Origin: Pavona decussata
Taxonomy: Eukaryota
NCBI GenBank assembly: GCA_977016875.1
Contig: CDRNST010000035.1
Coordinates: 4,216,001 to 4,280,000, forward strand
DNA: 64,000 nt
Direction of reading: 5' to 3'
Shown: positions 1,336 through 64,000 of the stretch, piece by piece
How the letters are laid out: the number at the start of each line of letters is the position of its first letter
How positions within the stretch are numbered: the first letter of the stretch is position 1
Translations under genes and position numbers: made by a program
Notes under the pieces: model-generated
What the model saw: only the letters and a program-made list of their open reading frames with translations
Database searches by the model: none
What the model was told of the DNA's origin: nothing

Positions 1336-1809
1336 TTACTCCTCATTGTTAACCCACTTCTCAAGGACCTCTGCTACAGCCATTCGCTTAAGATCCTCAT
1401 CCTTCAACAGCTCAATCAGCCTTCCAACAGTTGCATCACAGCTCGATGACCATGTTGACAACACAACATTAGTGGGGTTTTCCAACTGCTCAACAAACTT
1501 GATCTCATACCTGTCTAATCCTACCTTTTCTGCCAGCATTCGGAAATCATCAAATCGCAGAATGCGTCTGATATTCAACATCAGGCAGACACTGGAGTAC
1601 ACTTCCAGAGGTATGTATGCCACCTTAGTTGAAAGGCGATGTAGCTGCATGCGGGGACGTGCAGTTGGGGTCGCATATTGCTCCTCTACTCCAGTAAAGG
1701 GTGCTTGCAAGGTACCATGAACATCAGTGTTAATGTGCAGGACAGCCAGCATGAAGCTCAAGATGAAGGCAGCATACCAGTCTGATGGCAGCTCTTGGCA
1801 GCTTTCAAA
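1336..1809 (-). CDS. G1 terminal exon 3: second TM helix (WYAAFILSFMLAVLHI) + linker + C-terminal MyD88-like death domain
   Basis: The ORF 1336..1761 extends in frame to the acceptor ...tttcaccctttag|TTT GAA AGC at 1809 (phase 0, matching the exon 2 donor). DD pattern: YSSVCLMLNIRR..FDDFRMLAEKVGL...ENPTNVVLSTW...ATVGRLIELL...R..V.EVLEKWV*. Confidence 0.85.
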   Translation of the reverse strand, partial: FESCQELPSDWYAAFILSFMLAVLHINTDVHGTLQAPFTGVEEQYATPTARPRMQLHRLSTKVAYIPLEVYSSVCLMLNIRRILRFDDFRMLAEKVGLDRYEIKFVEQLENPTNVVLSTWSSSCDATVGRLIELLKDEDLKRMAVAEVLEKWVNNEE

Positions 1810-3275
1810 CTAAAGGGTGAAACAGCATCTTATTTTATTACTTGCTGTTACAATGTTTCGTACCCAATTACACATTAAGTACAGTGCATGCATTGGCTGA
1901 TAGCAACATTCATTATAATTCATGATTTAGTACCTTCCATTAGACCTCATAATACTAAAAGCTTAATTTGACTCACTCCAGCTAACTGTCTGACATATTA
2001 TTTTGTAGTTTTTCAATCACTAAGGCTTTCTCTTTGTTTTCTTCTTTTACTTTATTAGGAAATTATTTAAATTTTACAAATCTTTCTTAAAGGATACCAG
2101 CCTCATAGCTAAAAGGGATACCCTGGTTAAATAAAGTTACTTAGTTGAGTTTAAGTTATAATTACTTGTCTACTTACTTACTTCCTTACAATGGTAACCT
2201 GCCAGGAGCATTAAGTCCTGTTGACACCCTCTGCAGTATTTAAGCGCTTTTTCTGTACATATTGAAAGGCTGATGATGGATAGTTCTAATAATTAACCAA
2301 TTGAAACAATTTTATAGGAGTCCTAAACTAATAGCTACACCAAGTTCAGTCCAAGTTTGTATTCACTCCGTTAATTCTATTACCTTATAAATTATTTGTA
2401 GGCCCATTAGATGTAATTACAGTGGAAGCCCACTTTTAACAGACATGCCTTGCCAGTGCACTTCCCATTCAGCCAAACCTAAAAAAAGTTTCATTTATGC
2501 AAGGAGTCTCGTTATTGGAACTTAACGCTCTGTGAGTTCTCTCCTGTCAGAGGTTTCTTCATGTTGTTTTTTTCTACTCTGGCGAAGTTTATAAATAAAT
2601 AAATAAAATTTAGGTGCTCAAGGGAGTAGTATTCTAAAATTTTTTCCAGTTTCATAAATTTCTGTTCTCGGAATTTTGGGTTGAATGGAAAGCACATCTA
2701 GTTATTACAAACAGTCTTGTTGACCTGCTCATTAAGGATCACTATATGGATGCATGCATGATTGGTTCTAGTGATGTTACGACTGTACAAATGGGCTTTG
2801 ACTGTATTCGGATTGTCTGTAAAAAGTTAACTACAGAGTAGATACAACTTTTACAACTTTATAAAATATTTATATCTTAATATTAATTTAACAGAAATAT
2901 GCAGTCCACATATACAGCTGTAGCATAGCTAATACAGGCAGACTGTGTAACTTAACAATTATTACATTTTACACGTAAATAGAATAAATAATACGCTCTC
3001 GTCGTTCCCTTGAAAAATCTATACCCATTTTCAGACCAAAACAGCTTAAAACCATACCCTTTGGGGCGGCAAATACCTATTATAGCTAATATTGGGGAGC
3101 AACCCCACTCTCCCCAGGTATTAAGAACAGTTTTAAAAGATTGCATTTGTAAGTGGATGTACATACTAGTACAAGTTGGGAGATTTTGATGCAACATAAT
3201 TTCCATGCACAAACCTTCTATGGACATGCAGCTGAACATTTTAATCAAAGATAATTTAACATCCAAGCCATATAC

Positions 3276-3421
3276 CTTTCCATTGAAGTTTAATCCTTTG
3301 TCCACATAAAGCAGGAAATACAGGCAAACAAACAACACCAAACAAGTGAACAGGATTGGTACTGGCTTCACTTTTTGGCAGAATTGTGTGATCCATTCTT
3401 TGAACCTTGGCTGAGATGGTC
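3276..3421 (-). CDS. G1 exon 2: first TM helix (PILFTCLVLFVCLYFLLYV)
   Basis: Acceptor ctgataattgcag|GA (phase 1) and donor GGA AAG|gtatat (phase 0), 146 nt. The phases join exon 1 and exon 3 in one open frame. Contains a 19-aa hydrophobic stretch. Confidence 0.75.
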
Positions 3422-61240: not shown

Positions 61241-61359
61241 CTGGTAACAAGATAGTGATTAAGGTAGCAGAATAACAAACAGATATCAGACATCTGATAC
61301 AGTTAAAAAATGGGTGGGCAACATTACTGGATAACAATTAAAGGAAATGGATAAGGAAG

Positions 61360-63020
61360 TTGAGTTTTGTTCTTAATGACAGTACCCATGCACTGATACA
61401 GAGCTATTTTTGTGCAGTTTATGACCGTGTGAAAAGCAGATCTTAACAAGGGCTATTGGAAACCAAAATGAAAATTGGGGGTAAACCACACATTTTTCAG
61501 AGATGATAAAGCAACAATAATAATAATAATAAAAAAAAAGAAATTAATACAAAGCAAATTATTGCTTTTTATTCTGTATATATCGAAGCTTTAGTATCTC
61601 TGAAAAATGCATGGTTACCCCCAATTTTTTTATGGATACCAAGAGCGCTTGCTATGTTCTGCTTTCTCCGCATAGTTTTAAACTGTGCAAAAATATCCCT
61701 GGAATAGTATGCACCACCCATAGAAAACTGAGCATGTGGAGATGCGCAGAAAGTATGAACAGTAGAAAAAGTAGGCACCATTCTTAAAATATCTCTGTTT
61801 CTCATTTGCAAACCCTTTTTCACTGAGCAAAGGAAGTGAGTTCACAAAGAGCTAAGCCTTTTTGTACACTTTACCTCTTTGCTCTGAAAACCCAATTAGA
61901 AGCCACACATGTGCATTTGACCAAAAATTATGACTTGTTGTTTATGTGGAAATCAACTGTTTTCTTAGAAGTCAGGCTTGTTAGAATTTAGTGTAATTAA
62001 TTGACAAAACATTTGTTTCCTAAAAGTGTAACTTACCTACAACAAAAGACCAAAATCTGACAGAGGGTATCTAACACAAAAGCTAGGTAATTGAAGTGCA
62101 AAGCCAATATCTACAGACGATCATTAAGGGGAGGCTAGCAGCGAGGCCTGGAACTAAGTTTACATGATCGTTCCAGTAAAGAAATTTGGCCCAGTGAGAC
62201 TAAGTGCTGATTTTTGATAAACAAACGAGCAATGTAGTGGCAAATGCGGGTTTGTGTAGGTTCAGCAAATAATTTTGTTTTTCCTCATCCAAACATTACA
62301 GGAAATGTTCAGTCACATAATTTTCATCATGGACAAAAGCAGTTAAGTCCTTAGGTAGTTCCCACATGAATTTCTTACATGTCAGGCATGCTTGTAGCGG
62401 TTTTTTAACGATTGACAGATTTTATGATTTTTTATGATTTTGTGACTGGCAATCATGTCTGATGATGATGATGGCTTGCTGAAAAAACCAGATCAAAGAT
62501 TAAGCTGCCAGCCCCCCTGCTCAAACTTAAATCAAACTCAAACTCAATCCTACTCAAACTCAACTCGATCTAACTCAACTCAGGATCGTAAATCAGTATA
62601 AATAGCTGATCCCAACATTCACTCACCAATATTATTCTATGCTCACAAGTTGATTCGAGCTTCGCATTCATTTATATTATCACAACCATAGCGCGATGGC
62701 CAGAATATCTCATGCCATGGTGTACTTTGTGTGTGACGAGCTATAACTTTAAAGGCGGTGCCTACTTTTGTTATTGGCATACATTCTGTGCATCTCAAGA
62801 TACTTGGCTTTCCTGTGGGTGGTGCCTTCTAATACAGGGCTAGTTTTGCTCAGTTTAAAACTATGCGGAGAAAGCAGAACTTGGCAAGTGCTCTTGGTAT
62901 CCATAAAGAAAATTGAGGGTAACCATGCATTTTTCAGAGATAATTAATCTTCAACTTGGGAAAAATGCCATTCATTGCCTTGTATTTTAGCGCTTTTTAG
63001 AATTATTGTTGCTTAATTAC
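61360..63020. repeat. Segmental duplicate of G2 intron 1 (~28140-30560); also 59735-59990 matches 27570-27800
   Basis: Colinear shared unique sequence and shared MITEs in the same order. Confidence 0.85.
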
Positions 63021-64000
63021 GTGGGATGCCCTGAGGGGCAAACCATGTTTAAAAACGGGTAGATGTTTTTTTTTTTACACAGAATGCCCGCAGGGCAGGC
63101 CGTGTCTAGGTTTGGGTGGGGTATCTTTTATTTTTCTTTGTCGTAGTCACAAATCTGCACATTAATTTATGCATTAAACTCTGTCCTCTCCTAGTAGGGA
63201 TGTATTGTTCTGATTGTCATCAACAGAAGCGGCCCAATCAAAATCCATTATCGAGGCACATATCACGAGAGATCCCTTCCGGTGTGAAGTCAAATCATTA
63301 TTTGATTTATTCATTAAACCTAGATTGTCTTCAACAAAAACGGCCCAATCAAAATCCATTATCGGCGCGTATATCACGAGGGAGGGGACCCACTCATCTC
63401 TACCTGTGTGACGTCAAAGCAAATCATCAGTTGGAAGGCCGTGTTTTGTTCAATGGCGGCCACATGTATGAGTTTAAGACTCCAATCTGCCATTTTCAGA
63501 AAGAAAACAAACCTTTTTACAAACGGTGAATCAAAATAACTTTTAAGTAGTACTCAACAGTTTAAATTGTGGAAATTGGGAGAGTTCACAGTGAAGAAAT
63601 TATGCTTTCACAAACAGATCAAATAATTCAAGGTGAAGGAAGCCAGACCAGTTCCAGCGGGGTCATGACGTTATCGCAGAGTAATTTCCGGTATGATTCC
63701 CAGTGACACAATGATAACATATCATGCAGTCTCTCTAAATAAACCCATTCAATTATTTCAATTGCGAAGGGAGGATAGTTTTAAAAAATCTGCCAAGCAT
63801 ACAAATATGGGGAATAAATGGGGCTACATTAAGCATTCCGTGTTAATGCCATTAGGGGCATCTTGTTTTTTTTTTTCCTTCGTCGTAGTAACAAATCTGC
63901 ACATTAATTTATTCATTTAACTCTCCCATCTCCAGGGAGGAGGTGATACGAGTCCCCTAAAAACGACTGCGTGGGAAGCTACCCCTCTCCTAGTAGGGAT

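Follow-up and report, generated by a model that had tools for sequence, protein, structure and literature searches.

The DNA analyzed here, referred to below as the window, is the 64,000-nucleotide stretch at positions 4216001-4280000 of contig CDRNST010000035.1 (C35) in the 602-Mb assembly of the stony coral Pavona decussata; its GC content is about 38-40%. It carries four gene units, G1 to G4, and all of their modelled features lie on the minus strand. The last exon of each unit encodes a linker and a death domain (DD) of one subfamily, that of G4 being broken, and the N-terminal part differs from gene to gene: a putative exon containing a transmembrane helix in G1, a trypsin fold in G2, and the GT4-conflict domain of Pfam (PF20706, curated cut-off 26 bits) in G3 and G4. 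We consider it fairly probable that the window represents the middle of a large lineage-specific cluster of death-fold adaptor genes that has grown by tandem duplication and by the shuffling of symmetric phase-1 exons. An earlier note on this DNA had proposed four co-oriented units that end in paralogous DD exons, possess interchangeable upstream modules and are joined almost wholly by phase-1 introns. Our data bear this out, since Pfam Death is matched in all four terminal exons and only the second G1 intron is in phase 0. Three aspects we have not found described: a conserved protein family in which a dead trypsin fold precedes four DDs, the degeneration of the GT4 domains encoded in this cluster, and the locus itself as a case in which phase-1 exons have been shuffled and a chimera has recently formed.

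To identify the DDs, open reading frames (ORFs) were taken from stop to stop on the minus strand and compared with Pfam Death (PF00531, curated cut-off 22.6 bits). Six minus-strand ORFs of the window match this family, two of them internal to G2 and four terminal: those of G1 (1339-1809; 37.1 bits, E 3.5e-9), G2 (18204-18668; 35.8 bits, E 9e-9) and G3 (37216-37737; 35.1 bits, E 1.5e-8), and a fragment in G4 (54821-55072; 26.8 bits, E 5.7e-6). The terminal DDs are 45-61% identical to each other, and the motif IP..VY..VC.KLNI..FDDFRMLAE..NPT..WS..ATVG.LI.LL...DV...LE.WV was found in every one of the four terminal exons. In a tree of 23 sequences, which included the DDs of the window and those from another assembly, from Montipora, from TNFR-like genes and from other copies, the internal DDs are separated from the terminal and TNFR-like DDs with support of 100/99. 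The DD of G1 groups with its tandem copies and that of G4 with the DDs of the neighboring gene G5 and of a unit made of a Pro-rich repeat and a DD. The closest relative of the G3 domain is the DD from the other assembly (L008), followed by that of a Montipora GT4-DD protein (support 97/93 and 95/92), and the terminal DD of G2 groups weakly with TNFR-like DDs. In the best tree, DDs of TNFR-like receptors encoded on contig C58 are nested among the terminal DDs. When the grouping of the terminal DDs was examined by topology tests, a single clade of all 14 of them was not rejected (p-AU 0.167), while an exclusive clade of the four from the window was (p-AU 1e-90). As judged from these sequences, the terminal DDs are one subfamily but old paralogues without any sign of concerted evolution; the notion of a co-evolving set is consequently not supported, the four domains not being mutual closest relatives.

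The C58 domains (about 30% identity) come after ORFs with TNFR_c6 matches; the corresponding genes are death receptors. They form a second cluster (C58:3353800-3450000; L014, L015, L017, L018), and their C-terminal DDs are the nearest outside relatives of the terminal DDs of the window. The same contig holds a G2-like multi-DD gene (C58:2125900-2135899; L016), at which our genome search found no trypsin-like exon. A sequence search of the PDB with the DD of G3 gave weak matches to FADD, UNC5 and MyD88 (E of 0.02 or higher) that are too weak for the assignment of a DD subclass. A 257-residue protein (P0196) encoded on a 1102-nt Logan contig from another coral run combines transmembrane helices 1 and 2 of an SLC6/SNF transporter (Pfam SNF, 29.7 bits) with a terminal DD of the subfamily; it is either a further architecture of the type "two helices plus DD" or a chimeric assembly.

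Our model of G2 comprises 1243 codons, with introns that are all in phase 1 and internal exons whose lengths are all multiples of 3. Exon 1 (30895-31651) starts with an ATG at 31651, encodes the trypsin-fold domain, and ends at a phase-1 donor (CAG/GTAAAT) that, like the splice sites of exon 2, was read from the sequence. Exon 2 (25989-27581; 1593 nt, phase 1-1) encodes a disordered, Pro/Thr-rich linker with a 45-nt repeat present in 31.4 copies (26120-27530, as detected by Tandem Repeats Finder); it matches Pfam only weakly, to Extensin-like, and its 5' end is homologous to the short exon of G4. Three internal domains follow, each on a phase 1-1 exon. The divergent death-like domain DDa is encoded by exon 3 (24779-25063, 285 nt; ORF 24777-25118) and gives only a weak bDLD3 match, its Desmophyllum pertusum orthologue reaching 32.2 bits, above the bDLD3 cut-off. 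DDb, on exon 4 (21787-22110, 324 nt; ORF 21644-22417), scores 20.1 bits (E 7e-4) with Pfam Death and lies below the cut-off, and DDc, on exon 5 (20369-20674, 306 nt; ORF 20256-20705), lies above it (33.0 bits, E 6.7e-8). Exon 6 (18201-18667) encodes a linker and the terminal DD and ends with the stop codon (18201-18203). Intron phase, the G4 paralogue and a deposited Desmophyllum protein (P0150) suggest that exons 1 and 2 are joined; P0150 runs from the trypsin exon into the linker as G/EAITAIEGD, and the G2 junction reads G/EAVDSGEPRP.

Transcript contigs of four runs were aligned to positions 18150-24150 only. In three of these runs (X1, X2 and X3, from two studies), single contigs of 0.9-1.9 kb skip 18668-20368 and 20675-21786, both bounded by GT-AG on the minus strand, and their joints (18667/20369 and 20674/21787) are exactly the predicted phase-1 sites. 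The contigs continue through 21787-22112, and beyond 22112 they read, in reverse complement, into the 3' end of the DDa exon (...HRNDLKNKFQ). Transcripts hence join DDa, DDb, DDc and the terminal DD. Being spliced, these contigs can hardly be anything else than RNA, and no intron-less copy turned up in a search of the coral's own genome.

The whole exon series of G2 is also found in the same order, on one strand and within 7 kb, in Desmophyllum pertusum (GCA_029204205.1, MU826369.1; locus L027). In the numbering of this locus, it consists of a trypsin-like exon (10001-10744; about 50% identity to that of G2), a linker exon (12352-12552), DDa (12768-13062; 65-69%), DDb (13630-14011; 41-63%), DDc (14586-14899; 73-76%) and the terminal DD (16345-16715; 50-58%). 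Since the same exon series exists in this second coral, G2 is an old stony-coral gene and not a local accident. The deposited annotation of L027:10001-16715 presents this apparent single gene as three hypothetical proteins of 307, 127 and 322 residues. In the Desmophyllum gene, a short SQESQR-type repeat stands before the terminal DD; G2 instead possesses its long Pro/Thr repeat, which follows the trypsin exon.

Several other observations concern the transcribed part of G2. Run X8 contains one contig that links the DDc donor (20369) to 86 letters matching nowhere in 18150-24150, and another that skips 20676-21892 instead of 20675-21786; these variant joints may reflect alternative splicing or a paralogue in the sample. 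A plus-strand ORF of 254 residues (21972-22733), retrotransposon-like by eye and without a Pfam match, overlaps the intron and acceptor upstream of DDb and has contigs of its own in the RNA runs. Contig depth is very high in the intronic stretches 19758-20159, 21366-21566 and 23778-24150, which are probably expressed repeats.

The trypsin-like ORF of G2 (30863-31675) matches no Pfam family, peptidase models included, up to an E value of 10. An exhaustive search of 1.84 billion representative sequences returned 21 relatives, the clear ones having about 250-300 residues; a word-indexed search likewise gave 21, with Desmophyllum pertusum as the only named source, so far placing the family in stony corals only. 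One protein from the representative search (P0136) contains FIVAR repeats and was discarded as spurious. An AF2 model computed from the single sequence reached a pLDDT of 31 and was dropped. With an alignment of 19 sequences, AF2 yielded a model with a pLDDT of 79.6 and a pTM of 0.80. Foldseek found at least 500 matches to this model at E < 0.001, and all 50 of those listed are chymotrypsin-fold proteases. Structural superposition by VIA-align gave Z scores of 12.6-13.8 over 160-197 residues, with protein Z as the best match (Z 13.8, 190 residues, root-mean-square deviation 3.5, 11% identity), DegS, HtrA1 and V8 protease next, and HGF chains among the matches listed; the ESM Atlas neighbors of the domain are Trypsin_2 clusters at 0.97. 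The predicted structure thereby supports a chymotrypsin-type double barrel for the domain encoded by exon 1. When the sites of the His-Asp-Ser triad were assigned by motif alignment, each of the three motifs proved to be replaced (TAEDV for TAAHV, GLTVIPL for DIALLKL, GCAIL for GDSGGP), and the position of the nucleophile is occupied by Ala or Gly in 19 of the 19 aligned family members. The sequences accordingly support a domain that lacks the triad and would be catalytically dead, in keeping with the dead trypsin suspected before. A third trypsin-like copy, 67% identical, lies on the plus strand at C35:3859484-3860269 (P0121); about 13 kb downstream of it, a 584-residue ORF consists of GENQGGAPSETQPTSVNTAI-type repeats (L020:3810-5561), and there is no DD within 20 kb.

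In G3, the GT4 domain is encoded by a 1170-nt exon of phase 1-1 (40576-41745; ORF 40538-41806; PF20706 184.8 bits, E 3e-54), and the terminal exon (37213-37694), with a phase-1 acceptor (AAAG/AT), contributes the linker, the DD and the stop codon (37213-37215); their junction reads ...QQCH-D-SRTP. The phases of the two exons agree, and the exons line up with residues 1-394 (GT4) and 389-550 (DD) of a Montipora protein (P0010), to which the GT4 exon is 65% identical; they are likewise collinear with P0008, whose 556 residues are encoded on a Logan contig of 2011 nt. Full-length GT4-DD proteins occur in both Montipora and Oculina. By its predicted exons, G3 hence has the single-polypeptide architecture GT4+DEATH. 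Since the GT4 exon begins at an acceptor, at least one 5' exon is absent from the model; a search of 41746-47000 for an ATG combined with a phase-1 donor gave short, unconvincing candidates only (e.g., MEHTPAV, 45828-45849). The exon ends that we derived for the first exon of G2 and the GT4 exons of G3 and G4 (30895-31651, 40576-41745 and 57436-58605) coincide with spans given in other earlier notes on this DNA.

At least 205 GT4-conflict candidates are present in this genome, the best typical copies scoring 280-320 bits versus about 184 for those in the window. We aligned six typical copies of the same genome with the copies of the cluster and their relatives from Montipora, Oculina and Acropora. 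The glycine loop, the Arg/Lys pair and the EX7E motif are functional motifs in PimA, MshA and WaaG, and all six typical copies retain them (GGLST, GRGD...KG and EGFG...LEA). The cluster-type domains and their relatives in the three coral genera share a deletion of four residues that removes the glycine loop, and a further deletion of two residues, together with replacement of the Arg by Ser or Ala (Ser in the window copies). Where EX7E has its second Glu, these domains have Leu, Arg, Ile or Pro (Leu in the window copies), the placement of this motif being confirmed by alignment to MshA (3c4q); the Lys of the pair and the first Glu are kept. Judged from this alignment, the loss of motifs is old and common to several coral families, and the claim of a degenerate GT4 domain is thereby substantiated. 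Since the domain has lost these motifs and is still 57-65% identical between coral families, a conserved non-canonical role is indicated, and the DD-linked GT4 copies of the cluster are probably not enzymes. A related arrangement is found in ENA assembly ERZ26692694 (L008:2400-20313), where an intact G3-like GT4+DD gene is followed by a trypsin-like exon and then by a 639-residue ORF (P0003), a gene order unlike that of the window. P0003 fuses a Pro-rich repeat directly to GT4; its GT4 carries a frameshift close to the end, and several stops interrupt the DD that follows.

The fourth unit, G4, is by sequence a recent chimera of the 5' half of G2 and the GT4 cassette of G3 whose DD exon has decayed. 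As had been suggested, comparison by blastn reveals two blocks of homology: the 5' half of G2 (27563-31657) corresponds to 59729-65754 with 78-89% identity, and the G3 cassette (39128-42095) to 56129-59319 with 86-94%. A short Pro-rich exon of 144 nt (59604-59747; phase 1-1) stands at the boundary of the G2-like and G3-like halves. The GT4 exon (57436-58605; ORF 57398-58618; PF20706 183.2 bits, E 1e-53) is 94% identical to that of G3 at the nucleotide level. A trypsin-like first exon had been predicted past the end of the window and indeed exists there, about 0.9-1.8 kb further on (C35:4280942-4281757); it is open and 83% identical to that of G2. The proposal that G4 ends in the common DD did not survive. 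Alignment and translation of the terminal pseudo-exon (54765-55204) show a conserved acceptor (first base 55204), a stop at 55068-55070 ahead of the DD, and, relative to the closest relatives G5 and L010, two frameshifting deletions, of 14 nt at 55052/55053 and of 1 nt near 54839, which leave no usable DD. The 1-nt deletion falls within a run of G and could have arisen in the assembly; a homopolymer-type error does not account for the deletion of 14 nt. Diversifying selection between the GT4 exons of G3 and G4 was considered but set aside: the overall dN/dS is 1.02, G4 is broken, and relaxed constraint is the simpler explanation.

G1 is plausibly a small membrane protein with a terminal DD of the subfamily. 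In the model that we derive from sequence only, putative exon 1 (4511-4673) starts with an ATG at 4673, encodes 54 charged residues and ends at a phase-1 donor (GTA/GTAAGT). Putative exon 2 (3276-3421), with conserved splice sites, encodes one strong hydrophobic helix, PILFTCLVLFVCLYFLLYV (Kyte-Doolittle 2.55), and the terminal exon (1336-1809) a second hydrophobic stretch, a linker, the DD and the stop codon. This second stretch is borderline and is encoded only if the acceptor at 1809 is used; splicing to an alternative phase-0 acceptor at 1644 would leave it out. The exons add up to 260 codons in frame, with introns in phase 1 and then phase 0. Three copies of the 4.5-kb G1 unit stand in tandem; blastn puts their nucleotide identity at 80-84%, and most 200-nt blocks of their alignment reach about 85-96%. 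Between these copies, pN/pS is 0.25-0.44 in the DD core and near or above 1 in the part ahead of the DD, where it is based on few sites. Pfam gave nothing useful for the hydrophobic ORF of G1 or the Pro-rich exons.

In the coral's own genome, the DD exons of the terminal-DD subfamily extend over at least about 3.94-4.31 Mb of C35, where about 12 copies lie; one further copy is found on contig C57, in addition to the more distant ones on C58. The neighbors of the window are two GT4+DD genes (G5 and G6), a GT4 copy on the opposite strand and two further copies of the G1 unit; the unit of Pro-rich repeat and DD lies at 3.94 Mb. The named proteins nearest to those of the window come from Montipora capricornis, Oculina patagonica, Acropora and Desmophyllum pertusum. 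We saw no NACHT, NB-ARC or TIR domain in the domain scans of the window; for NACHT and TIR, the earlier note had likewise seen none. Two assembly gaps (32447-32580 and 36632-36817) separate the stop codon of G3 from the ATG of G2, and the spacing and adjacency of these two genes consequently rest on the scaffold; no modelled exon or ORF crosses either gap. The piece between the gaps contains a hAT C-terminal dimerisation domain on the plus strand (34808-35161; Pfam E 4e-7) and a minus-strand, retrotransposon-like ORF without a Pfam match (32663-33260), and a second ORF of this kind (11418-11810, minus strand) is located between G1 and G2. At 8099-8354, both strands encode nearly the same peptide (...NKTNDQFENLQENTIFVRGDQDVG...), which indicates an inverted repeat. 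Within 8444-9081, a 78-residue ORF start is found in identical form at 8444 and 8848, which suggests a tandem duplication.

Taken as a whole, the explanation that we favor combines the history of the cluster with assembly through DDs and sensing by pseudo-enzymes, and we place moderate confidence in it. The DDs would mediate homotypic assembly into signaling oligomers, the two pseudo-enzyme folds would serve as binding or sensing modules and not as catalysts, and the family would belong to the innate-immunity or cell-death signaling of corals. A number of points weigh against this explanation. An immune or cell-death role is suggested by analogy alone, and co-assembly of the cluster's products through their DDs is purely something that we infer; a complex prediction for the DDs of G1 and G3 scored 0.01, a value that counts neither for nor against DD-DD binding. 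Loss of catalysis in both the GT4 and the trypsin fold is deduced from motifs, and the trypsin-like paralogue P0121 keeps the His (TAEHVF), as the only family member seen to do so. The runs that support the G2 model were guessed to be RNA from their records, and 1-4% of the positions in their contigs deviate from the window, which makes another individual or a very close relative their source. Their support is confined to the exons of G2 from DDa to the terminal DD.

Alternatively, the locus might be a birth-and-death array without any joint function, in which independent products of duplication and shuffling share the DD through common descent, G2 and G3 work alone, and G4, and perhaps the G1 copies, decay. 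The broken DD exon of G4 and the dN/dS of its GT4 exon fit such a history, as do the similar trypsin/GT4 chimera in the other assembly (L008), which is also broken, the age of the terminal DDs, with that of G3 nearer to Montipora's than to those of its neighbors, the hAT and retrotransposon-like fragments between and inside the genes, and the pN/pS of 1 or more ahead of the DD in G1. However, death domains as a class act through homotypic assembly, and the subfamily has been kept at the C-terminus of very different proteins, TNFR-like receptors among them, which fits a common docking role; we judge a mere array to be unlikely. We deem it very improbable that the GT4 domains retain glycosyltransferase activity as effectors, using an unusual active site, and are recruited by their DD to a signaling complex in which they modify molecules of the invader or the host. 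Such an activity would agree with the effector role proposed for GT4 by Kaur et al. (2021), with the retention of the first EX7E Glu and of the Lys, and with the constraint evident between coral families. Nevertheless, the loop is deleted, the Arg replaced beside a two-residue deletion and the second Glu replaced in all members of the cluster and their relatives, whereas typical paralogues of the same genome keep all three. The explanation by DD assembly and pseudo-enzyme sensing could also be taken one step further, and this step we regard as decidedly unlikely: the old stony-coral fusions of pseudo-enzymes and DDs, namely dead trypsin with four DDs and degenerate GT4 with one, would be integrated decoys, whose inactive folds bind pathogen molecules aimed at host proteases or glycosyltransferases, or the substrates of these enzymes, and binding would nucleate a DD oligomer that includes membrane-tethered and receptor-borne DDs from the same subfamily, thereby triggering cell death or immune signaling.

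For G1, another reading is that the gene is not membrane-anchored at all: only the DD exon would be real, being either a remnant or a piece of some other transcript, and the hydrophobic stretches would be chance translations of T-rich non-coding DNA. We consider this possible rather than probable. Among transcript-derived proteins, none resembles G1 or its copies at more than 66% identity. Furthermore, the hydrophobic ORF VSSLFMSTVFLIIAG is in part the polypyrimidine tract upstream of an acceptor, and the second hydrophobic stretch scores only 1.51 on the Kyte-Doolittle scale. What counts against chance translation is the retention of the ATG, the ORF, both donors, both acceptors and the stop in three of three copies that have diverged by 6-12%, together with exon lengths that sum in frame and with putative exon 2 as the sole indel-free block (94% identical in the three copies) in intron-rich surroundings whose flanks carry indels.

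Innate immunity and cell death in corals bear on disease and bleaching, and the large lineage-specific families involved are known mostly as lists of domains. G2 offers here a partly transcript-supported gene model for a protein that is conserved across both main stony-coral lineages and unites an undescribed inactive trypsin fold with four DDs. For the GT4 copies, their probable lack of enzymatic function shifts the suitable experiment from transferase to binding assays. The locus is, in addition, a clean case of the exchange of symmetric phase-1 modules in an intracellular signaling family, including a recent chimera in decay.

Among known systems, protein Z and the beta chains of HGF and MSP are trypsin-fold pseudoproteases. 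The G2 domain resembles them in its predicted chymotrypsin-type double barrel with replaced catalytic residues; it differs in the absence of a detectable sequence relation (11% identity) and in its N-terminal position in a presumably intracellular multi-DD protein. Coral death receptors of the TNFR type share the terminal-DD subfamily, as seen in the TNFR_c6 genes on C58, but none of the DDs in the window is preceded by a cysteine-rich TNFR repeat. According to a review (PMC4083563), genes of Acropora that combine a GT-group-1 domain with NACHT were reported in 2013 and occur in local pairs or triplets. The likeness lies in a coral-specific GT-B fold joined to an apoptosis or immunity domain and in local gene groups; the partner in the window is instead a DD, NACHT, NB-ARC and TIR not having been seen in the domain scans.

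The closest precedent is the work of Kaur, Iyer, Burroughs and Aravind (2021; eLife 10:e70394), who described more than 500 GT4 paralogues with variable architectures in Acropora digitifera and proposed that GT4 acts as an effector in conflicts. For this coral, GT4+DEATH appears 21 times in their source data, and a combination of trypsin with GT4 or DEATH never. The genes of the window have in common with these proteins the coral GT4-conflict domain with a C-terminal DD, the huge expansion of GT4 and the inferred context of conflict and immunity. They differ from them in that the window copies have lost three features, namely the glycine loop, the Arg of the pair and the second EX7E Glu, a loss of which we found no mention in the text of Kaur et al. 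(2021), and in that the GT4 genes cluster with non-GT4 genes possessing the same DD. The same authors laid out the effector-associated-domain (EAD) principle, which the inference of the earlier note restates: a single adaptor with a death-like fold serves a range of modules, trypsin-like peptidases and GT4 among them (Kaur et al., 2020, 2021). Since GT4+DEATH and this principle were already in place, the architecture of G3 and the general logic of the locus are known; of the claim that the arrangement had not been described, the part that stands concerns the dead-trypsin/four-DD family and the degenerate GT4 copies of the cluster. The window differs from the EAD systems in that it belongs to an animal and owes the fusion of its modules to exon shuffling, in that its trypsin and GT4 folds look inactive, and in that its adaptors are not closer to each other within the genome than between species; such closeness within one genome is a stated feature of EADs. 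What the locus shares with the EAD/bDLD systems of bacteria is a death-like adaptor combined with variable modules, the internal DDs of G2 matching bDLD3. Our findings do not overturn current ideas; they refine the inventory drawn up by Kaur et al. (2021) and supply proteins that can be put to the test.

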